Shown piece after piece: positions 6,217 through 48,111 of a stretch of DNA of 64,000 nucleotides (positions within the stretch are counted from its first letter, which is position 1; each line of letters opens with the position of its first letter). Below the pieces are notes generated by a model, which had not been told where the DNA came from, ran no database searches, and saw only the letters and a program-made list of their open reading frames with translations. Both the position numbers and the translations under genes were made by a program. Location: IMG/VR virus record IMGVR_UViG_3300045974_000132, positions 124,001 to 188,000 of that record, one strand, 5' to 3'.

Positions 6217-7638
6217 CTAAAATGCCTTTATATCAAGAGTTTTCAGATCCCGTACTACCCGAACTGGGAGTATCTTCAACTCTTGTTGCAGCTTTTTGAT
6301 GCTAAGTTCGGCCTCCTTAATTGCCGATTTAAGTTTAGATGCCTCAAGTGACTTTAGTTGCCTTACTTTCAGATCGAGGATTTCATTTGCTTCTTCTGGA
6401 GTTATCTTCAACTTCGTTACCAGATAAGCAGTAGAGTCTTCTACCTTCAAAGATGCAATAATCACAGCAAGATTGAGGACCGCAAGCAGAGTTACGTTCA
6501 ACCTACGTAACTTCTTTTCCTCCAATGAGATTAGATAATGAACTACCTTACGTTCCATTTCGATGCGCCAGCTGCACCATTCATGAATCAAGGTAGCTAC
6601 GTCAGAACGTCGGAACGATACGCCTTTAAGTTGTCGATCCGTAACTCCTATATCATAGGATTGTGTTCGTGTTATTTCCTTCTCAACTACTGGAAGTACA
6701 TCTTCCAGCTTTAGGTTTCTCATATAGGTTATTTCAAATCTAAAGCCCTTCTTGTCTGAAACATCTGACACCGATTGGATCATCGGTTTAGCCAAAAGGT
6801 TCTTACTGAGAGTTGCCCAACTAGCCTTTGAAATCAACCCGGGTGCTGCGGATGTTAATGCGATGATGCGCTTTGCTTCATCTACTTCCAGAATCGGTCG
6901 AAATGATATACTGCCCTTGCCGGTTTTAAAGAATGCAAGTTTTGTTTTCCGATCCGATATACACTCGCCGCCGTATGCAAAGTTAAAGTCCAAGTTATCT
7001 AAGCACAGCTTTGGTGTAATCTTGATGCCTTCTAAACACATTACAACTAGGTCCAGAACACCCTTGATACCGAACGATGGGCATTCTGCGCTCATACCGA
7101 AAGCGATTGACACGCTGCCGTTCAACAACAAAACGGGAAGCTTGACAGGTAGCACTAACGGCATTCGATCATCACCGCTGAAGTTAGGCACATAGTCTGT
7201 CACCGCCAGATACGTCGGATCGAGCATGTACTTCGTTGCAAACGTTGACAACCTTGCTTCAGTATAACGGTAAGCAGCAGGAGGGTCGATGTTATCTCCC
7301 CAATTGCCGAAACCTTCTACTAAGGGAATAGGCGTGTTGCGTGTTGCCCAATCCCCTTTCTCATTCTTCGTACCTGCGATACCAACCATCGCGTCATACG
7401 TTGAAGAGTCACCGTGTGGGTGGAACTTACCTAATACCTCACCTACAGTACGAGCAGCTTTCTTGAAAGGCCCTGAGTCTTTCAACCCTAGTCCATACAA
7501 CGCCCATAGAACACAGCGATGGACAGGCTTAAGGCCGTCACGAAAATCAGGAACTGCTCGTTGCATAACAACCTCTTGTCCATAAGACAAAAGATTACGT
7601 GCTGTTATGGAAGATAAAGATTCAGTTTGGTGTGTCAC
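6217..7638 (-). CDS. gyrA: type IIA topoisomerase subunit A (GyrA/ParC-like, lacking C-terminal beta-pinwheel)
   Basis: RAVPDFRDGLKPVHR, GKFHPHGDSS, catalytic AAYRYTEARL; only 473 aa. Confidence 0.93.
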   Translation of the reverse strand: MTHQTESLSSITARNLLSYGQEVVMQRAVPDFRDGLKPVHRCVLWALYGLGLKDSGPFKKAARTVGEVLGKFHPHGDSSTYDAMVGIAGTKNEKGDWATRNTPIPLVEGFGNWGDNIDPPAAYRYTEARLSTFATKYMLDPTYLAVTDYVPNFSGDDRMPLVLPVKLPVLLLNGSVSIAFGMSAECPSFGIKGVLDLVVMCLEGIKITPKLCLDNLDFNFAYGGECISDRKTKLAFFKTGKGSISFRPILEVDEAKRIIALTSAAPGLISKASWATLSKNLLAKPMIQSVSDVSDKKGFRFEITYMRNLKLEDVLPVVEKEITRTQSYDIGVTDRQLKGVSFRRSDVATLIHEWCSWRIEMERKVVHYLISLEEKKLRRLNVTLLAVLNLAVIIASLKVEDSTAYLVTKLKITPEEANEILDLKVRQLKSLEASKLKSAIKEAELSIKKLQQELKILPVRVVRDLKTLDIKAF

Positions 7639-9523: not shown

Positions 9524-9575
9524 TAAATCACCTTCTACTAAATACTAATTTAATTGTGTTATAAAGGAGAACATA

Positions 9576-10631
9576 ATGAAATTAGCGGATTTTAAACAAA
9601 ACCTAACTTTAATCAACCGAGAGCAAGTAGCTAATTTTCGTGAGCTATTTCCTTCTAAGTTTACAGAATTACTAAACAAACAAAATGAAGGAAGGGCCAG
9701 GAAAGAGGGTAGATTAAAAGCTCAGATTTTACATGATTTCTTATTCAAAAAACCAAAATGTTCTTGTGGAAAACAAACAAACTGGATGCCTGAAGGCAAA
9801 TATGCAAAGTTTTGTTCGCGTGAATGTGCAGATGGTTCACAAGAAACCGTAGATAAAAGAAGGGCTACTTCTAAGGAAAGATTTGGTGGTGAACCAAATC
9901 TGCATCCTACTATACAAAAGAAAAAGAAGAAGGTATTCCTTGAGAAATACGGTGTAGACAATCCTTCAAAATCAGAAAAGATCAAACGCAAAAAGCGTAA
10001 AACGTCCTTAAGTAATTTTGGAGTAACGCATTGGACTAAAACAGAAGAAGGTCGGCAGTTTATGTCTGAAGAAAATCCGATGTATCTTGCAGCTTCGCTT
10101 GAAACCTTAAAGAAGACGAATCTAAGTAAATACGGTTGCGAGTTTGCTTCTCAGCATAGATCCGTAAAAGCTAAAATGAGAAGGACTAGCTTAAAGCGAT
10201 ACGGTGTTCCTAACGCAGGCGTACTACCGAAATTTCATAGAAAAATATGCTCCGATAGATTTGGTACAACGCATACAGTTCAGGGCTATGAACCCAGAGC
10301 CATTGAATGGCTGTCTAATAGGAAAACCGTTGTAAGCATAAGTTCTTCCAGAAATAGCATACCGGTAATATACTATAAAAGCAATCGTAGCTACTATACT
10401 GACCTAGTCGTTAGTATGAAGTCTGGGTTAAAAAGAATAATAGAAGTAAAGGGCTCCTATCCTCTTAGGTGCTGCTTTGAAACAAACGTTCAGAAATTTA
10501 AAGCTGCTTCAAAGTATGCTAAATCTATAGAGCAGGAGTTTTGGCTGTTCTACTATACAGACAGAGGGCGACTTATAAAGGTTCGGTCGCCCTCAAGAAA
10601 AGACTTAACAAGGCTGCTATCGAGTCTGTAA
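9576..10631 (+). CDS. free-standing putative homing endonuclease (KYG repeats + C-terminal PD-(D/E)xK domain)
   Basis: CxC...CSxxC zinc motif, repeated KYGVxNP-type motifs, C-terminal QGYE...YYTD...IIEVKG; AT-rich; only plus-strand gene; AAGGAG SD and upstream CTAATTTA. Confidence 0.8.
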   Translation: MKLADFKQNLTLINREQVANFRELFPSKFTELLNKQNEGRARKEGRLKAQILHDFLFKKPKCSCGKQTNWMPEGKYAKFCSRECADGSQETVDKRRATSKERFGGEPNLHPTIQKKKKKVFLEKYGVDNPSKSEKIKRKKRKTSLSNFGVTHWTKTEEGRQFMSEENPMYLAASLETLKKTNLSKYGCEFASQHRSVKAKMRRTSLKRYGVPNAGVLPKFHRKICSDRFGTTHTVQGYEPRAIEWLSNRKTVVSISSSRNSIPVIYYKSNRSYYTDLVVSMKSGLKRIIEVKGSYPLRCCFETNVQKFKAASKYAKSIEQEFWLFYYTDRGRLIKVRSPSRKDLTRLLSSL

Positions 10632-12245
10632 CTCTATGCCTTCTTTAAGGTCCTGTGCTTCTGTATAAATACCATCTATCTGCAACCAAGGATGGTCTAT
10701 AGTACATATCCAAGTAGTCCCGTCAGACAGTTCTACTTCAATCAATTCGTCAACCCATTTAGTGAGTCGAGGTTCATCAAAAATGACCTCGACTTCTTTT
10801 TTGGTCTTTAAATTGAAAGCGAAGCCTTTAAACTGTTCTCCAGCTTCCGTACGCTTTGCCATTTCTTCAAAAAGTATAGTAGAGCCGTCAGAAAGAAGAA
10901 CTGGTGTATTTCCAATGAAACAGCCCGCAGCAGAGTCACCTTCAACTAGATACAGCTCACGGGCAGCCACAGGGCATTTCGGAGCAGCAACTAGAGAAGA
11001 AGGAAGCGAAGATTTAGCACGTCCCTTAGCATCAGCAATTGCTGACAACGTTTTCTTGAAAGCTTCCTTTGATACCTTAACAGCCATCGCACGTTTGACA
11101 ATAGCCCGTGCAAGAGGTTTGTTCTTGTCGAAGAATAGTTTCAACTGAGGAAGTAGCAAAGCTTCAACCTGCTTTGACACATTGGAAGTCAGTCGATCCT
11201 TTGTCTGACCGCTGTACTCAGCATGGTGCATCTTCCAGTCAAGAATACCTACAAGTCCCGAGTACGCATCTTTCGGAGCAAACTTCTGGGTCTTCTTCTT
11301 GAAAGGAGCAAGTGCAGCATTCAAAGAATTGCGGAAGCCAAGTTCATGCTCACCGTCATCCCGAGTACGTCCAGAACAGACATAGGTTTCAAGCGCATCA
11401 TCGTCAGAGTAGGTCGACCATTGCAGAGCAACAGACATATCATCATGGATGAAAGAGAACATACGACCTGTTGCAGTTACATCCCGTTCGGCCAACCGTT
11501 GCTTGATAATAGATTCAAGACCGCCCTTATTCAAGAAGGTCTTAGACTTTCCATTAGCACTAAACGTTACTTCCAACCCCGGATTGAGATTAGCAAACGA
11601 CTTCATCCAAGCAGCCGTATAACCAAGATCGAGAGTTGCTTTCGTCTTACCCTTGTCAGTCGATACGATTGTTTGATCTGTTGACCAAAGAACGATTGTC
11701 CCCGATACAGGCTTGTAAGGCATGATCTTAGTAACGCGCACAGGAGGCTTCTCTTTGAGCAACTCTGTTACAGGTTTGCCCTTAGAGAACTTCTGATAGT
11801 GCCAAGCTTTGTCCCGAAACGTCCATACTTCAAAAGAAGAGGATACAGCATTAACACCTGCTGCTCCTACTCCGTGAACACCGCGCGACTTCTTGTAAGC
11901 ACTGTCATTGAACTTACCACCTGTGTGCAGTTCAGTAAAGATCAATGTCAGGGTTGATGCTTTCTTGCTTCTAGGATTCTCGGGATCAACGACCTTTAGG
12001 CCAACAGGGATACCTTGAGCTTTGTCTGCTACAAGATAAACGTTGGCCTTATTGTCAGCATAGACGAAGATGGACTTATTACGACCAGCCATAAATTCGT
12101 CAGCAGAGTTGTCGAAGATTTCCTTGACGCATTGAAATACCATTGAACGACCGCGCTCACCTAGGTACATCCCAGGGTTTTCACGCACATTATCTGGAAA
12201 CTTTAATCTAACAATATTTGCTTCACTGTATGAAGACCTTGCCAT
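10617..12245 (-). CDS. gyrB: GyrB/ParE N-terminal half (GHKL ATPase, transducer) fused to split-intein N fragment (IntN, 101 aa, 10617-10922)
   Basis: VRENPGMYLG, EIFDNSADE, GIP, LHTGGKF, GVHGVG; TOPRIM VEGDSAAG followed by intein block A CFIGNTPV and block B TIDHPW, then a stop. Confidence 0.93.
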   Translation of the reverse strand: MARSSYSEANIVRLKFPDNVRENPGMYLGERGRSMVFQCVKEIFDNSADEFMAGRNKSIFVYADNKANVYLVADKAQGIPVGLKVVDPENPRSKKASTLTLIFTELHTGGKFNDSAYKKSRGVHGVGAAGVNAVSSSFEVWTFRDKAWHYQKFSKGKPVTELLKEKPPVRVTKIMPYKPVSGTIVLWSTDQTIVSTDKGKTKATLDLGYTAAWMKSFANLNPGLEVTFSANGKSKTFLNKGGLESIIKQRLAERDVTATGRMFSFIHDDMSVALQWSTYSDDDALETYVCSGRTRDDGEHELGFRNSLNAALAPFKKKTQKFAPKDAYSGLVGILDWKMHHAEYSGQTKDRLTSNVSKQVEALLLPQLKLFFDKNKPLARAIVKRAMAVKVSKEAFKKTLSAIADAKGRAKSSLPSSLVAAPKCPVAARELYLVEGDSAAGCFIGNTPVLLSDGSTILFEEMAKRTEAGEQFKGFAFNLKTKKEVEVIFDEPRLTKWVDELIEVELSDGTTWICTIDHPWLQIDGIYTEAQDLKEGIELQTR

Positions 12246-13092
12246 GTTTTTTCTCGAAGTGTTTTATTTTCAAAAGGAGTTCTTCTAAAGACAGATGACT
12301 TGTACTATTTTTCTTCATATTAGTTGTACAAGGCATTAGTTTTAGATTCGCGGGATGGCATATAATGTGCAAGGGTACTATGGGTGACCGCTTCACATAT
12401 CTATTCTTTGCTTGTGAATAAATATTCCAACCGTCAAACAAACTTAACTGATGGTCAACATGGTGATCATAAGACCTTAAACTTTTAGTGTCAATAAGGT
12501 CGCCCCACACGACTAAGACGCTCTCAGTAACTTTTCGTACCGCATATTTGTAAGAAGACTGTGTAGTAAAAGTCTTCCTAAAAGCATTGCGTAAACTTTC
12601 TTGATTTCTTTTTACACAATTAGCAGTGCCTAATTCCAAGGAACGCTGAAATGCTAAGTTGACACGCTCTGAGGTAGACCTTAAAGCAATGCCCTCTTCT
12701 TGCAATACATTCTTAACATGTAGAGGGTCCCGTAAAGCCACGCATTCTGTAATTTCCTGAATACTAGCACTATCCTTAACGTACATTCTTATTATTTTTT
12801 GCCTATTTTTCTGTACAATTTGTTTATGATGCTTTATGAGGTCGGCTTTACCTTTAGATACGCCTTCTTCATTAACAATAGCTTGTACAGTAGACATAGA
12901 CAAACCTACTTCCTCTGATATATCTCGGAAGGTCTGATTTTTGTATAAACGTACTACTTTCTTTTTTAAGCGATCTGGGATTATTAAAGCCCACTTACCG
13001 TTTTTGGATTTAGTGTAACTATATCCATTTTTCCATTTAACCGTATCCCCTACGTTTCCGGGATAGGTTCTAGGTATAACATTTTGTAGCAT
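12223..13092 (-). CDS. putative homing endonuclease (HTH + HNH-like)
   Basis: HTH (TFRDISEEVGLSMSTVQAIV) and C-terminal HVDHQ...HPANLKLM...NMKK; AT-rich; overlaps the gyrB start. Confidence 0.7.
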   Translation of the reverse strand: MLQNVIPRTYPGNVGDTVKWKNGYSYTKSKNGKWALIIPDRLKKKVVRLYKNQTFRDISEEVGLSMSTVQAIVNEEGVSKGKADLIKHHKQIVQKNRQKIIRMYVKDSASIQEITECVALRDPLHVKNVLQEEGIALRSTSERVNLAFQRSLELGTANCVKRNQESLRNAFRKTFTTQSSYKYAVRKVTESVLVVWGDLIDTKSLRSYDHHVDHQLSLFDGWNIYSQAKNRYVKRSPIVPLHIICHPANLKLMPCTTNMKKNSTSHLSLEELLLKIKHFEKKHGKVFIQ

Positions 13093-13099
13093 AGTAGAC

Positions 13100-13139
13100 T
13101 CCTAGATACATACACATCTAAATTAGTATGTATCTAGGA
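13100..13139 (-). promoter_or_regulatory. SD-sequestering hairpin containing the CTAATTTA promoter motif
   Basis: 14 bp inverted repeat TCCTAGATACATAC/GTATGTATCTAGGA covering AGGA of the AGGAG SD of the HNH gene; motif at 13119-13126. Confidence 0.75.
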
Positions 13140-26437: not shown

Positions 26438-26728
26438 CTATTTTATATAGAACAGCTTACCGAAGTTGGCAATGTTCAAAGCTTTAAGAACGTCGCCTTT
26501 AGCATTAATCAACCTGATATTAACTCCAGGGAATCGGTCACGCGCTATTAAGATCATTCCTAAAGCGGAACTATCTAAATAGGTACATTCTGTTAGGTCT
26601 AAGTCTAAGGTAGTGCAACCAATTAATTTTAAAAGATTGGTTCTAAAATCATTATGGCAATTAAAGGTAAATCTACCTTCAGTGTATAAGGTAGCTGATC
26701 TACCCTCAAAACGAGTACGAAATTGCAT
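26438..26728 (-). CDS. STAS domain anti-sigma-factor antagonist
   Basis: LDLTECTYLDSSALGMIL with the phosphorylatable Ser; LNIANFGKLF. Confidence 0.88.
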   Translation of the reverse strand: MQFRTRFEGRSATLYTEGRFTFNCHNDFRTNLLKLIGCTTLDLDLTECTYLDSSALGMILIARDRFPGVNIRLINAKGDVLKALNIANFGKLFYIK

Positions 26729-26793
26729 GATACTTCCCCTTTATTGTTCTTAAGGCTAAATTAGTATCATGCAAATGTCGCGGTCTTGTACGT

Positions 26794-33205: not shown

Positions 33206-33590
33206 GCCGCTCACCTATTTTGGTAATAAGGACTCCGTCATTATCAGGAGAGTGAGCGGCTTAACAAACCAAAGTCTGTTAGTGACCCCATCCGTTTAGG
33301 TGCTGTTAGGCAGCCTTCCGGAAAGACGCATCATTCGCGGCAATTACAAGTTTAGCCCGGTTTAACGAGAGTACAATGCTCGGATCGTTCTTTATCAACT
33401 ACTCATGCCCAATCGAAACCAGGTCAGGCCCATCAGGATCGTTCTATGTATCACCCACCCCGGTGACCTCAGCCTTGCGGTAGGACCTTTCGGCACACAG
33501 AACGATTTTGGTGGACCTGGGGAGAATCGAACTCCCGTCTTGAACACTTTTATTTCAAAAGTCTCATAAGCAAAGTTGTTCCGGTAGCTA
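33206..33590 (-). ncRNA. ssrA: circularly permuted (two-piece) tmRNA
   Basis: T-arm and CAGGTCC-ACCA (33509-33540) lie upstream of the 5' strand GGGCCTG (33431); G3-U70 pair; tag ORF (A)ANDASFRKAA* at 33306-33341; outer boundaries approximate. Confidence 0.9.
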
Positions 33591-33646
33591 ATCGGCTTTA
33601 CTTACATACGATCATATTCCTTAACACGCCAATGATTACGTGTTAG

Positions 33647-34455: not shown

Positions 34456-34530
34456 TGGTTGAGGATGACGGGATCGAACCGACGACCCTCTGCTTGCAAG
34501 CAGAGGCTCTCCCAACTGAGCTAATCCCCA
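34456..34530 (-). tRNA. atypical tRNA-Ala(UGC), possibly pseudo
   Basis: U1-A72, G3-U70, ACCA; palindromic anticodon arm with a 6-nt loop TTGCAA. Confidence 0.75.
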
Positions 34531-38154: not shown

Positions 38155-38239
38155 TGGTGCTGAGGGCGGGACTCGAACCCGCGTGTCCTTTCGGAGCCGG
38201 ATTACAAATCCGGTGCTGTCGCCACTGAGCCACCTCAGC
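38155..38239 (-). tRNA. tRNA-Thr(UGU) with long variable arm
   Basis: GCTGAGG/CCTCAGC, CCGGA-TTTGTAA-TCCGG, variable arm TCC-GAAA-GGA, ACCA. Confidence 0.9.
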
Positions 38240-44601: not shown

Positions 44602-45180
44602 TTAACTACCTGCGCGTCGTTTTGCATCGTTAAACTTAGATAACTGATCTTCAGTTAAGAACTGTTCCCAGCCCTCTAAGATTAGATCCGGATGAGAAGA
44701 CAAGATTGAAACAATGTCATTCAAGTCTTTGAACTCGCGCTTCAACGTGTTAGCACCAAACAACTTTAGAACAACCATTGCCTCCTTAGAAGCAACAAGT
44801 ATCCCGTCATGGTTTACTGCGGTGTGTATCACCTTCTTAGCAACGGGTATAGGTAGTTCAATTGAAGCAGGTGTTGTAAGCTCAATATCAACCTGCGTTT
44901 TGTTTTCTTGAAAGGCACCTGGCCTATAACGCTTGAAGCCCTTGACTTCAGTAGGTACTAAAGCTTTACTAAGAAACAGAAGGTCTACGTCTTCAGTGTA
45001 ACGAGGCTTTGCATAGAAAGACATTGCAAGTCCGCCGATTAAAACACCGGGAGCTTCTGTACCTACTTTAGATTTAATCCAAGCAAGTAAAGCATGTTGC
45101 ACTTCAGGAACTAAGGCTACATGCTTTACCTCAGATACTGCCGACGCATACACAGACATGTTACGAAGTATCAGTTCCAT
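44602..45180 (-). CDS. AbiEii/MenT-like nucleotidyltransferase
   Basis: LIGGLAM...PRYTEDVDL and LKL...KDLND motifs of the DNA polymerase beta-like NTase fold. Confidence 0.75.
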   Translation of the reverse strand: MELILRNMSVYASAVSEVKHVALVPEVQHALLAWIKSKVGTEAPGVLIGGLAMSFYAKPRYTEDVDLLFLSKALVPTEVKGFKRYRPGAFQENKTQVDIELTTPASIELPIPVAKKVIHTAVNHDGILVASKEAMVVLKLFGANTLKREFKDLNDIVSILSSHPDLILEGWEQFLTEDQLSKFNDAKRRAGS

Positions 45181-45193
45181 CGTTGCTCCTAAA

Positions 45194-45274
45194 GAAAGAA
45201 GACCGGGCTTCCACCGGCAGCAAGATTAAGCCGAAGCAACCTCTCTGCGTCAGATTTGGTATCCGACGACTTTC
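45194..45274 (-). ncRNA. tRNA-like cloverleaf RNA
   Basis: GAAAG/CTTTC closing stem, CGTCGGA/TCTGACG arm, TTCG-capped arm, GCCGG-TGGAAGC-CCGGT T-arm-like. Confidence 0.45.
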
Positions 45275-45309
45275 TGGTAGGCCCGGTCAGACTTGAACTG
45301 ACGACCAAA
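45275..45309 (-). pseudogene. 3' half of disrupted resident tRNA (Ile2-like)
   Basis: TTTGGTCGTCAGTTCAAGTCTGACCGGGCCTACCA. Confidence 0.9.
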
Positions 45310-45323
45310 TACTTAAACTAACT

Positions 45324-45401
45324 TAGTGGGCCCAACTGGATTTGAACCAGTGACCCTCCGGTTATGAGCCGGGCGCTGCTAACCAACTGAGCTATAGGCC
45401 C
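45324..45401 (-). tRNA. tRNA(CAU), probably Ile2 (or elongator Met); encoded end CTA not CCA
   Basis: GGGCCTA/TGGGCCC, CCCGG-CTCATAA-CCGGA, TTCAAAT. Confidence 0.88.
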
Positions 45402-45402
45402 T

Positions 45403-45993
45403 CTAAGTAAGCTTTCGTCCTCTACCTAGCTTAGGCAATAGAGTACGGCAAATTTTGGTATAGCTGCTTTTAACATGACTATAAGTATCACCGCGCAACA
45501 TTGAGAACAGGGTAAGAGGATGCACATCTAACTCTTCTGCTAGTTCATGATGGGACAATTCATACTCAGAAAAGTATTTCCTAAGGCGTTTAACTTCACT
45601 ATCTAAAAACTTTGAATTAGGTCTAAGCTCACCTCGAGGATCAACGCGCAAACCTGTTGCCAGTGCGTGTTTCACATTACCGGAATTAGTTGTCAATTCA
45701 AGATTTGTTAATCGACAGTTAGCTTTAATCCCATCACGATGGTTTAACTGTAGTTCAGAGTCCTCTGGTATCCCCTTAAAGTGCGCCCATACAAGCCGGT
45801 GCAATTGTATCTGACGAATCTTTTTAGAGTTAGGATCTTGCCAAGATAGCTTTCGATATCCTTTTGAAGAAGGAGTCTTAGCTACTTCCTTACCTGAAAT
45901 CAAATTAAAAGCTTTACCAGACTTCGTAACTTTTAACTTACCTGAGTTTATCAGGCTAAGAAAGAAGCGTTCATTTCTAAGGTTTGCCGCCAT
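45403..45993 (-). CDS. HNH homing endonuclease with C-terminal HTH
   Basis: LHRLVWAHF...NHRDGIKANCRLTNLELTTNSGNVKHA; GELRPNSKF; LSHHELAEELDV. Confidence 0.9.
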   Translation of the reverse strand: MAANLRNERFFLSLINSGKLKVTKSGKAFNLISGKEVAKTPSSKGYRKLSWQDPNSKKIRQIQLHRLVWAHFKGIPEDSELQLNHRDGIKANCRLTNLELTTNSGNVKHALATGLRVDPRGELRPNSKFLDSEVKRLRKYFSEYELSHHELAEELDVHPLTLFSMLRGDTYSHVKSSYTKICRTLLPKLGRGRKLT

Positions 45994-46033
45994 GAGGTTA
46001 GAGCAGAGTAGTGGTATAGCTCATAAATTAGTA

Positions 46034-46065
46034 TCCTCTGCTCTGACCAACTGAGCTACAGGCCT
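46034..46065 (-). pseudogene. 5' half of disrupted resident tRNA (Ile2-like)
   Basis: AGGCCTGTAGCTCAGTTGGTCAGAGCAGAGGA; acceptor pairs with CGGGCCT at 45279-45285. Confidence 0.9.
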
Positions 46066-46074
46066 AAAACTTTA

Positions 46075-46226
46075 TAAGGTTGCTTACATTCTCGATCACC
46101 TACCACCAGTAAGTCAGTGTCGATAGTTGTGATACGCTCAACGTGCAGCCCACAACTCCTATGCACGTTAAAGCTCAACTTCATCTGGACTATACATCGA
46201 CCAGTCTAGGTGTTAAGCAAACCTTA
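46075..46226 (-). ncRNA. putative stem-closed structured RNA
   Basis: TAAGGTT(T)GCTTA(A)CA closing stem; internal AACGTGCA/TGCACGTT. Confidence 0.5.
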
Positions 46227-46496
46227 TTGGGTAGCAGCAGCTTCGTAATAATATTCCTTGAAGTGCTTTAAGAAATCTGACAGCGTAGATTTGATAGTCA
46301 CCTTAGGGCGGAAGCTATCGTCAAGCATCGTATTAAAGGTTTCTTCAACAAGAAGGATTAACTCAAACATGTCCATCGAGTCTAAATCTAAGCCTTCTAA
46401 AGTATCAGACAGACTTGCTTTGCAGGAACGATCATCTGAAAACAGTTTCAGGAATTGCTCTTGCAAAACATCTTCTTTCAGTTTTAAATTAGTCAT
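46224..46496 (-). CDS. second acyl-carrier-protein-like protein
   Basis: LDLDSMDMFELILLVEETF. Confidence 0.75.
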   Translation of the reverse strand: MTNLKLKEDVLQEQFLKLFSDDRSCKASLSDTLEGLDLDSMDMFELILLVEETFNTMLDDSFRPKVTIKSTLSDFLKHFKEYYYEAAATQ

Positions 46497-46553: not shown

Positions 46554-46928
46554 TTACTGACGGGACTTGCGTGAAGACTTCTTGCCATCCTTGGAACCGC
46601 GCGAAGACTTTTCGGCCTTCTTCGGTTCAGCAGCAGCGGCCGCTTTCTTAGCAGCACGGGTAGAAGTCTTGGCCGGAGCAGCAGCCTTAGCAGGAGCAGC
46701 TTTGGCAGCAGCAGCAGCAGCTTTGGCCGGGGCAGCTTTGGCGGTTGCCGCAGCAGCACGGGTAGAGCGAGCCGGAGTCTTTTCGCCAGCGGTGCCGATT
46801 GCCGAAGATTGAGCAATAGTTTGATTGACAGCTTCGACAGCATCAGCAACAGCCTTCTTGGCAGCGTCGATAGCTTTGTTGGCAGCAACCAGAGAAGAAA
46901 TAGCCTTCTTGAGAGTACGAGAATTCAT
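46554..46928 (-). CDS. histone H1-like Ala/Lys-rich protein
   Basis: AKAAPAKAA repeats. Confidence 0.75.
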   Translation of the reverse strand: MNSRTLKKAISSLVAANKAIDAAKKAVADAVEAVNQTIAQSSAIGTAGEKTPARSTRAAAATAKAAPAKAAAAAAKAAPAKAAAPAKTSTRAAKKAAAAAEPKKAEKSSRGSKDGKKSSRKSRQ

Positions 46929-47016: not shown

Positions 47017-48111
47017 TTACTCGTCGTCATCACCCCAATCTTCGTCATCTTCTTCATCATCTTCTTCATCATCTTCTTCGTCGTCGGAGTCTTCATCATC
47101 CTCGTCATCTTCTTCGTCGTCGTCGGAGTCTTCATCATCCTCGTCATCACCTTCTTCGTCATCTTCTTCATCATCTTCTTCGTCGTCGTCGGAGTCTTCA
47201 TCATCCTCGTCATCACCTTCTTCGTCGTCGGCATCTTCATCATCGCCGTCTTCGTCGTCATCACCTTCTTCTTCGTCGTCCTCGTCTTCTTCCTCAGCAG
47301 CCTTACGACCTCGCTTGGCTTTCGGAGCAGCGACTTCAGCAGCAGACGCATCTTCTTGGGAGAAGACTTGAACTTCGACGCCTGCATCATTGTTGGTGTT
47401 GATGATAACGGTTTCGCCATCAGTCGTCGTAACCTGAATCAGGCCGCCTTCCAGTTGCGAAACTTCGCCTTGATACTCGGCCAGCGTGACCGTCTTGTAA
47501 ACGTACAGCGTTGCGTCTTCACCTTCGTTGCCCTTGATAGAGACAACATCCTTCAGCGGGAAGGTAGAGACTTGGACACGCTTGCTGCGTTCCTTAGCAT
47601 GACGGAACACGACATTCTCGGTAGAGAACGAAACGAGTTGACCTTCAAGCTGAACAACCAGGCGGCTGACAAGAGCGATTTGCTGACCTTCGTCAACGCC
47701 CTTGGAAGCCTTGGAACCGCGACGCGGAGCCTTGGTAGCTTTTTCGGTTGCAGCAGCGCCTCGACGCGAAGACTTCGCCGGAGCAGCTTTTGCAGTACGT
47801 GTAGTCTTGGCAGGAGCTGCCTTTGCAGCAGCGGCACCACGACGGCCACGAGCCGGCTTTTCTTCAACTTCTTTTGCAGCACGACGACCACGTGCCGGCT
47901 TTTCAGCGGCAGCAGCCTTGCTTGAGCGAGTAGAGCGTGCCGGCTTTTCAGCAGCGGCAGCAGCGCCACGACGACCACGAGCCGGTTTTTCTTCAACTTC
48001 CTTTGGTGCGCGACGACCGCGAGTAGAGGTCTTTTCAGCGGCAGCAGCGCCACGACGGGTTGAGGTCTTTGCCGGGGCAGCCTTGGAACTACGGGTTGAT
48101 GCACGAGCCAT
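47017..48111 (-). CDS. basic-repeat / acidic-tail nucleoid-like protein
   Basis: N-terminal EKPARGRR repeats, central beta domain, C-terminal Asp/Glu tract of over 80 aa. Confidence 0.8.
   Translation of the reverse strand: MARASTRSSKAAPAKTSTRRGAAAAEKTSTRGRRAPKEVEEKPARGRRGAAAAAEKPARSTRSSKAAAAEKPARGRRAAKEVEEKPARGRRGAAAAKAAPAKTTRTAKAAPAKSSRRGAAATEKATKAPRRGSKASKGVDEGQQIALVSRLVVQLEGQLVSFSTENVVFRHAKERSKRVQVSTFPLKDVVSIKGNEGEDATLYVYKTVTLAEYQGEVSQLEGGLIQVTTTDGETVIINTNNDAGVEVQVFSQEDASAAEVAAPKAKRGRKAAEEEDEDDEEEGDDDEDGDDEDADDEEGDDEDDEDSDDDEEDDEEDDEEGDDEDDEDSDDDEEDDEDDEDSDDEEDDEEDDEEDDEDWGDDDE

Follow-up and report, generated by a model that had tools for sequence, protein, structure and literature searches.

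The DNA analysed here, referred to as the window, comprises 64,000 nucleotides (nt), namely bases 124001-188000 of the complete virus record IMGVR_UViG_3300045974_000132 (286,393 base pairs (bp) with terminal repeats, 43.7% G+C), the genome of a jumbo phage of 286 kb. At the locus under study a homing-endonuclease gene of the HNH_3 family and a whole gene for a transfer RNA (tRNA) with the anticodon CAT are located between the two halves of a second, broken tRNA gene. All features of the locus lie on the minus strand, likewise the neighbouring genes. In 5′ to 3′ direction the locus consists of the tRNA 5′ half (46034..46065), a promoter-like motif (46024..46033), a 15-nt spacer, the 3′ arm of a hairpin (45996..46008), the dinucleotide TC, the HNH open reading frame (ORF; 45403..45993, 196 amino acids, ATG at 45993-45991), 1 nt, the whole tRNA(CAT) (45326..45401), a 16-nt spacer and the tRNA 3′ half (45275..45309). 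The HNH gene and the whole tRNA(CAT), hereafter the cassette, by this arrangement appear to occupy the former anticodon loop of a tRNA(CAU) gene, both halves of which persist. The analysis focused on the leader of the HNH gene, which is complementary to the D-arm in the tRNA 5′ half.

The 5′ half, delimited by sequence reading and a pattern scan, holds positions 1-31 of the tRNA, i.e. the acceptor strand, the D-arm and the 5′ strand of the anticodon stem. It reads (46065-46034) AGGCCTG TA GCTC AGTTGGTCA GAGC A GAGGA, the break being located directly after GAGGA (position 31). The 3′ half (45309-45275) reads TTTGGTC GTCAG TTCAAGT CTGAC CGGGCCT A CCA and includes the end of the anticodon stem, the variable loop, the T-arm, the acceptor strand and CCA. 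Since the acceptor strands of the two halves pair at 7/7 positions, they were assigned to a single tRNA gene split by ~725 nt. This broken tRNA was called neither by ARAGORN nor by Rfam, only the nested tRNA being called (ARAGORN; Rfam 59.4 bits). In a whole-genome tRNA scan, which yielded seven tRNAs in all, the nested gene was the sole CAT tRNA, and this status fits a role as replacement for the split gene.

In an exact-pattern scan with the last 31 letters of the 5′ half (G2 to A31), the same 5′ sequence was found in two other viral contigs, L002 and L003. L002 contains a whole tRNA(CAT), the first 32 letters of which (A1 to A31) are identical to the 5′ half of the window and which continues uninterrupted as ...GAGGA CTCATAA TCCTT TGGTC..., with the pairs A1-U72, C4-G69, C5-G68 and G27-U43; these features resemble those of tRNA-Ile2, which makes it a tentative identification. 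An uninterrupted target allele is present in L002, and matching halves flank the cassette in six loci. At 45312-45310 the window reads GTA where a relative from a public run reads TCC, and TCCTT is found at that site in L004 and L012, which argues that the cassette replaced only the 7-nt anticodon loop and that the 3′ half of the window was altered afterwards. In L003, the same 5′ half extends to GAGGACT; next come a GIY-YIG/NUMOD3 endonuclease gene and a whole tRNA(CAT), in this order. The comparison of L002 and L003 marks this tRNA position as a recurrent target of unrelated endonuclease genes. In the INPHARED phage collection, a generic tRNA-Met was the only match.

Two other readings of the split gene were rejected. 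For a group I or other intron in the anticodon loop, no match to the Intron_gpI model with E<=10 was obtained in 45000-46300, and the ~60 nt of non-coding sequence are too little for a ribozyme; the search has power, as the same Rfam model detects an intron in the nested tRNA of the relative L016. A functional split tRNA joined by trans-splicing, of the archaeal type, was discarded because both halves lack the anticodon loop (in the window also 3 nt of the stem) and because the partner of the leader is its own D-arm rather than the 3′ half. As an observation in its own right, the tRNA(CAT) after the HNH gene of L016 (2130-2338 of contig Ga0556162_0000140) has its group I intron after CTCAT (RF00028, 59.3 bits), which would conceal the anticodon loop from an endonuclease targeting that loop and recalls partnerships between free-standing endonucleases and introns.

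The HNH gene was assigned by Pfam, PHROG and structure-database matches: PF13392 was matched with E 7e-11, above the curated cut-off, the PHROG HNH endonuclease with E 2e-29, and the closest solved relative is I-HmuI (PDB 1u3e; E 2e-6, residues 18-115). A word-index protein search gave 16 homologues with 45-85% identity. The residues H65, N84, H85, D87, N106 and H109 are invariant in 17 homologues, and the N-terminus M-x-A-N-L-x-N-E-x-F-F is common to all; therefore, the assignment of the start codon is taken to be right. Scans of viral contigs for close relatives with the HNH protein, the 3′-half pattern and the motif pattern gave no matches. By an alignment-based scan only the free-standing relative L048 and one distant match were obtained. 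The metagenome pattern scan returned 23 loci, all of them chance matches and none with a tRNA half upstream, and a scan with the D-arm/anti-D pattern returned one real remnant (L050) and one chance match in a tRNA cluster. The contigs of three DNA runs included a relative with the same layout and a diverged HNH gene, and no RNA run was found to contain this DNA. No description of an HNH gene and a nested tRNA inside a broken tRNA was found in the literature searched, whose incomplete coverage means that this is not proof of novelty.

In the leader, GGTCAGAGCAGAG (46048-46036) pairs at 12 of 13 positions with CTCTGCTCTAACC (46008-45996), as found by a repeat finder as well as by direct reading (92% complementarity, 27-nt loop). 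The 5′ arm corresponds to approximately positions 18-29 of the tRNA 5′ half, i.e. the D-loop, the 3′ strand of the D-stem, position 26 and the start of the anticodon stem. The 3′ arm spans -15..-3 of the HNH start and, being followed by TC, ends 2 nt before the start codon. C46045 against A45999 is the sole mismatch of the arms. Both this pairing and the presence of CTAATTTA in the loop, which lies within TACTAATTTA at 46033-46024, had been noticed in an earlier note made from the letters of the window, and both were confirmed. Folded alone, the hairpin has a free energy of -17.3 kcal/mol, and it is retained in the minimum-energy fold of the entire leader. According to folding predictions for five loci, the probability that -15..+6 is unpaired amounts to 0.17-0.33 on read-through RNA vs 0.55-0.76 on RNA starting at motif+7; in the window, the stem lowers the predicted accessibility of this region to 0.24, with the AUG itself outside the 13-bp helix.

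Inverted repeats with at least 12/13 matches and a loop of 3-40 nt occur at six distinct places in the 64 kb window, as compared with 0-2 in eight dinucleotide shuffles. One such repeat per 64 kb would be unremarkable by itself; the position at a start codon, the use of a tRNA D-arm and the recurrence, taken together, are not chance, and a chance origin was rejected on account of the recurrence in five diverged loci. A role of the stem as terminator was rejected, as no T-run follows it. Pairing of the leader in trans with the intact tRNA(CAU), in the manner of a T-box sensor, had been prompted by the complementarity of UUAUGAG to the anticodon loop; nothing was found in its support and it was dismissed.

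The architecture of the window, namely 5′ half, CTAATTTATGAG, a variable stretch of 11-15 nt, GCTCTAAC(C), 1-5 nt, ATG of the HNH gene, whole tRNA(CAT) and 3′ half, is shared by L004, L012, L015 and L020, the HNH proteins of which are 85%, 83%, 56% and 51% identical to that of the window and the acceptor strands of which pair at 7/7, 5/7, 7/7 and 6/7 positions, respectively. In each of these four loci the helix between D-arm and leader has 8-12 bp, and six loci share an unchanged core GCTCTAAC. The distance from the end of the motif to the ATG is held at 27-31 nt, and the intervening spacer is unalignable at ~50% HNH protein identity, as would be expected of non-coding DNA free of constraint. 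The retention of CTAATTTATGAG, GCTCTAAC and this spacing beside an unalignable spacer indicates selection, although the comparison of conserved leaders is a small sample of five to seven loci. Two further relatives have a hairpin in the same place with different letters. In L047 (49% identity; halves pairing 7/7), a perfect 14-bp palindrome TTTTAACTCATAAA/TTTATGAGTTAAAA is built from the anticodon loop and extends up to the ATG. L013 (62% identity) has an inner stem TTTTGACTC/GAGTCAAAA enclosing ATACTAATTTA, and its minimum-energy fold shows the nucleotides that directly precede the ATG paired with the anticodon-stem strand of the tRNA half. L018, L019, L022 and L048 are free-standing HNH genes which follow a whole tRNA. 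L050 (8781-8839, minus strand) has no HNH gene; a 5′ half, a whole tRNA(CAT) and the anti-D arm GCTCTAACC are present there, and the locus looks like a cassette copy in decay.

An eight-codon upstream ORF (MSYTTTLL*, 45998..46024, minus strand; stop 4 nt before the HNH ATG) offers one explanation for the leader: its translation from 46024 would open the stem and bring ribosomes to the HNH start, which has no Shine-Dalgarno (SD) sequence. This is in keeping with the window and L012, where GAGGA stands 9 nt before the ATG of the small ORF and its TAA lies inside the 3′ arm. However, frame and stop differ in L004, L015 and L020, all three without an SD sequence for the small ORF, L013 has no ATG there, and the ATG is merely part of the conserved TTATGAG. 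As the frame is not conserved, coupling was rejected as a general mechanism; it is highly improbable as an explanation of the leader, and the small ORF was judged incidental.

The motif in the loop of the hairpin was characterised by its statistics in the whole genome. Exact TACTAATTTA is present in 7 copies vs 1.4 expected, all seven of them intergenic and at most 100 nt upstream of a gene on the same strand; in 40 permuted controls, sites averaged 0.8 and none lay upstream of a gene. When up to one mismatch was allowed, 44 sites were found, 28 of them intergenic and 19 upstream of genes (controls: 24, 4.4 and 1.3, with a maximum of 4 upstream). Positions in the window include 9543-9552 (+), 13119-13128 (-), 26757-26766 (-) and 46024-46033 (-). 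Exact copies precede the HNH gene described here, a second endonuclease gene, a third HNH-like gene and the gene of a 289-amino-acid helix-turn-helix protein (weak HNH match), so that three or four endonuclease-like genes are among those preceded by the motif. Near-exact copies are located in front of the genes for tail sheath, head maturation protease, a tail-fibre-like protein and a virion structural protein, and looser variants in front of those for UvsX and the single-stranded DNA-binding protein. Among the relatives, TACTAATTTA is conserved in L004, L012 and L013 and the motif core in L015 and L020. A sigma-factor gene is present in the phage genome (201637-201795), and a search for the RNA polymerase beta-subunit domain PF00562 gave no match. 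Taken together, TnCTAATTTA is probably a late-type promoter element dependent on a phage sigma factor, its activity and timing being what we infer from this distribution.

The second of the endonuclease genes preceded by the exact motif (9576-10631, plus strand; homing-endonuclease-like, phrog_3339, with DUF7487 and a TnsA-like nuclease domain) has TACTAATTTA 23 nt upstream and lies between two topoisomerase II subunit genes (6217-7638 and 10617-12245), on the strand opposite to the HNH locus.

Two of the other five strong inverted repeats in the window likewise have the motif at or in the loop (13141-13098 and 26776-26721, both on the minus strand). The 3′ arm of the former ends in TCTAGG of an SD sequence, 10 nt before the ATG at 13092, and that of the latter includes the ATG at 26728. 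In all three hairpins the 5′ arm is located upstream of the likely transcript start, and folding predicts an unpaired probability of -15..+6 of 0.17-0.33 on read-through RNA vs 0.43-0.76 on RNA that begins 7 nt past the motif. A promoter-in-hairpin design thus seems to recur in this phage, the 64 kb of the window containing three genes with it. In L003 (123-752 of IMGVR_UViG_3300038299_000132), the T4 late promoter TATAAATA is found in the loop of a TTCATAT/ATATGAA hairpin over the ATG of the GIY-YIG gene, which suggests that an unrelated endonuclease family took the same tRNA site with the same control logic.

Homing endonucleases need low and late expression, since they otherwise harm the carrier genome. 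We propose, with a probability of roughly 60%, that hairpin and internal late-type promoter form a switch according to the scheme of I-TevI, in which the D-arm of the split tRNA is the repressing arm. A homing cassette composed of late-type promoter, leader, I-HmuI-like HNH gene and whole tRNA(CAT) would have taken the place of the anticodon loop in a phage tRNA(CAU) gene. Read-through transcripts, initiated at the promoter of the tRNA itself or at upstream genes on the same strand, would include the 5′ tRNA half; a sigma-70-like promoter match (TTAACA-16-TATAGT, 46189..46216, minus strand, 10/12 consensus match) ~120 nt upstream of the broken tRNA is a candidate origin. In such read-through RNA the D-arm would pair with 13 nt before the HNH AUG, the stem of ~-17 kcal/mol would occlude the SD-less start region, and the nested tRNA could be obtained without production of the endonuclease. 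Transcripts from TACTAATTTA in the loop would start downstream of the 5′ arm, hence form no hairpin and be translatable, and HNH protein would be made only when the internal promoter fires. It is the promoter-like element in the loop, whose nature the earlier note had not recognised, that would make the hairpin a switch instead of a permanent block.

That the D-arm remnant was co-opted as the repressive arm of a translational switch had been suggested in the earlier note. As regards the pairing, this suggestion gains support: the arm is kept in five loci, hairpins of other letters are found in L047 and L013, and the predicted accessibility, the two analogues in the window and the precedent of T4 point to a pairing which is functional and predicted to be tied to HNH translation. 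Repression itself is the part that we infer.

Several observations weigh against the proposed switch. The HNH leader has no SD sequence, so strictly there is no ribosome binding site to sequester. The sigma-70-like match upstream is no better than chance, as a shuffled region yields equally many matches. L014, L016 and L046 follow a 5′ tRNA half, yet have no pairing. In a six-sequence alignment 88% of the helix cells are paired, vs 34-42% with the partner slid by 1-3 columns; among these six sequences no covariation was detected, shuffles equalling the observed score, and 7/10 core pairs never vary (the D-arm is invariant). Because the D-arm core never varies, the covariation test is uninformative and speaks neither for nor against the helix. 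The support for the helix would then consist of conserved complementarity, which a role at the DNA level would equally give. Moreover, the cassettes conserve a TGAG behind the motif that is not conserved at the other motif sites of the genome and that a model of promoter and hairpin leaves unexplained.

A DNA operator would account for the conserved TGAG, unlike a promoter alone. Here the leader would be an inverted partial copy of the HNH target beside the promoter (the D-arm GGTTAGAGC as GCTCTAACC, CTCATAA as TTATGAG), to which the HNH protein binds without productive cutting and thereby represses its own gene. TTATGAG is the exact reverse complement of the anticodon loop of the target and GCTCTAACC that of the D-loop and stem, both are found beside the motif, on its downstream side, in five loci, and the absent covariation fits a sequence-specific site as well as a helix. 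On the other hand, a real target half with the same D-arm is already present just upstream of the promoter, so that an inverted copy is unneeded for binding; L047 and L013 retain the hairpin, not the D-arm copy; and the fixed distance of 1-5 nt between 3′ arm and ATG would be anticipated if the role were translational, and an operator has no need of it. We consider the operator unlikely as the explanation of the leader, and it is compatible with the proposed switch, as are an inherited scar and a processing element, none of these being mutually exclusive.

The sole mismatch of the helix is a further point against the switch: C46045 of the window (D-loop GGTCAGAGC, as in L002) is opposed by A in the leader and uncompensated, and the same mismatch is present in L050. 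It follows that the leader probably arrived with the cassette from a GGTTAGAGC background and that the D-arm is that of the recipient. The uncompensated mismatch in these two loci would also agree with an inherited scar, i.e. a repeat which is a by-product of the origin of the cassette, for example by foldback or snap-back repair where the anticodon loop was broken, and now serves no function. The palindromes of L047 and L013 have their centres directly behind CTCATAA, which is what an inverted duplication at the loop break would produce, and L050 retains the 5′ half and the anti-D arm despite its lost HNH gene. A scar is nevertheless at odds with the selection indicated by the conserved elements and spacing of the leader, and with the recurrence of the design at two unrelated genes of the genome and, with other sequences, in L003; its probability is judged low, marginally below that of the operator.

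The stem may also be viewed as an element of RNA processing or stability, that is a cleavage or protection site for RNase III or RNase E, or a 5′ stabiliser, which separates the HNH message from the tRNA precursor. The HNH gene lies within a tRNA precursor, and the messages of T4 segB and segG are processed by RNase E, segB being cut in tRNA maturation (PMC2988022; PMC2330249). A stem of 10-13 bp with a large loop is, however, short for RNase III, and the promoter in the loop as well as the tight spacing to the ATG would be left unexplained. A further point in favour is that, in L003 (678-691), L014 (726-748) and L015 (1973-1995), the nested tRNA begins 14-23 nt before the endonuclease ORF ends; in the window, 1 nt separates the two. 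In these three loci, processing by RNase P would remove the stop codon of the message, much as reported for T4 segB. On balance, we regard a processing element as distinctly less probable than operator or scar.

The earlier note had further claimed that the pairing explains why the 5′ half is preserved. This explanation is unsupported, as the 3′ half, which is outside the hairpin, is kept equally well (acceptor strands pairing 7/7, 7/7, 7/7, 7/7, 6/7 and 5/7 in six loci). Decay in both halves (GATAA for GAGGA in L004; GTA for TCC at 45312-45310 in the window) and the uncompensated D-loop mismatch also speak against preservation through co-option. Both halves are more simply seen as homology flanks left by homing; copies with decayed flanks would be unable to spread.

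As a tentative generalisation, to which we give slightly less than even odds, the HNH cassettes targeting tRNA(CAU) in large phages may be half a riboregulator: the element would bring a late-type promoter and a leader directed against a D-arm that is nearly universal, the invaded tRNA gene would supply the repressing arm, and the switch would be complete only at insertion. If this is true, the strong tRNA promoter of the target would express the replacement tRNA, with the endonuclease remaining untranslated until the internal promoter fires.

Downstream of the 3′ half, a terminator-like hairpin with T-run was found by consensus scan only (45202..45218, minus strand). Next, and immediately behind the broken tRNA, comes the gene of a 192-amino-acid protein (44602-45180, minus strand) in which a short stretch matches an AbiEii-type nucleotidyltransferase (PF08843, E 7e-7). 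Upstream of the locus are the genes of a small acyl-carrier-like protein (46224-46496), of an Ala/Lys-rich protein of 124 amino acids (46554-46928, minus strand) and of a 364-amino-acid protein that combines Ala/Lys/Arg repeats with a long Asp/Glu tail (47017-48111, minus strand), the latter two without family match. Elsewhere on the minus strand of the window, a permuted (two-piece) phage transfer-messenger RNA (tmRNA) with the tag AANDASFRKAA is encoded at 33215-33601 (Rfam RF04321, 89 bits), and L020 has a tmRNA too. Two unusual tRNAs called by ARAGORN, both passing the Rfam tRNA model, are located at 34456-34530 (four-letter anticodon tgca, enlarged loop) and 38155-38239 (tRNA-Thr(tgt) of 85 nt).

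To our knowledge, the combination of a hairpin with a late promoter has so far been known from a handful of T-even genes. A hairpin which sequesters the start region and is bypassed by a late or middle promoter has been described for I-TevI, I-TevII, I-TevIII, segB and Aeh1 mobE as well as for the T4 genes e, soc and 49, and similar arrangements for the genes soc, e, 39, 25 and 26 (PMC2988022; PMC2330249). As in the scheme of I-TevI, an endonuclease gene would here be part of long early transcripts, a predicted stem would cover the start region, and a late-type promoter, recognised in this case by motif statistics, would give late RNAs devoid of the 5′ arm. In contrast to that scheme, the 5′ arm is the D-arm of a split tRNA gene and not a sequence of the element or intron, no SD sequence lies under the stem (which covers -15..-3), the motif is TnCTAATTTA and not TATAAATA, and the switch is a prediction from sequence. 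I-TevI is also autorepressed through an operator which resembles its homing site and overlaps its own late promoter (PMC2988022). A target-like sequence likewise adjoins the putative promoter of the HNH gene; this putative site differs from the I-TevI operator in its inverted orientation and in its complementarity to the true target half next to it.

In T4, the tRNA cluster harbours the gene of SegB, a free-standing GIY-YIG enzyme that cuts tRNA genes (PMC2330249; PMC13096335). Both systems consist of a phage homing endonuclease tied to tRNAs and, in the window presumably, co-transcribed with them, with a predicted hairpin occluding the start and with neighbouring tRNA genes that travel along. 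However, segB is located between tRNA genes and its product recognises a T-loop motif, whereas the HNH_3 gene is inserted into a tRNA gene at the anticodon loop, is accompanied by a replacement tRNA and has left both halves. With I-HmuI, the HNH nicking enzyme of Bacillus phage SPO1, the HNH protein of the window shares the HNH_3 core and the C-terminal DNA-binding region; the gene of I-HmuI resides in a group I intron within a DNA polymerase gene, in contrast to the intron-less, presumably tRNA-targeting gene described here. Integrating elements that restore tRNA genes, and fractured genes split by endonuclease genes, have been reported as well (PMC2677866). There, too, the element compensates for the disrupted gene; it does so here by a complete second, nested tRNA gene instead of a duplicated 3′ end, inteins or introns.

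The locus would thus extend the logic of hairpin and late promoter to an unrelated, uncultured phage of 286 kb with a different promoter motif, and TnCTAATTTA is a candidate late-promoter consensus for this phage group. An element that splits a tRNA gene yet brings a replacement bears on the turnover of phage tRNA sets, and for annotation it is of relevance that tRNA halves and SD-less endonuclease genes are easily overlooked. With a remnant of the invaded gene as repressing arm, regulation and target choice would be physically linked in one endonuclease family. Compared with the known T4 scheme, the repressing arm derived from the invaded gene, the start without an SD sequence and the whole replacement tRNA appear to be the new features of this cassette.

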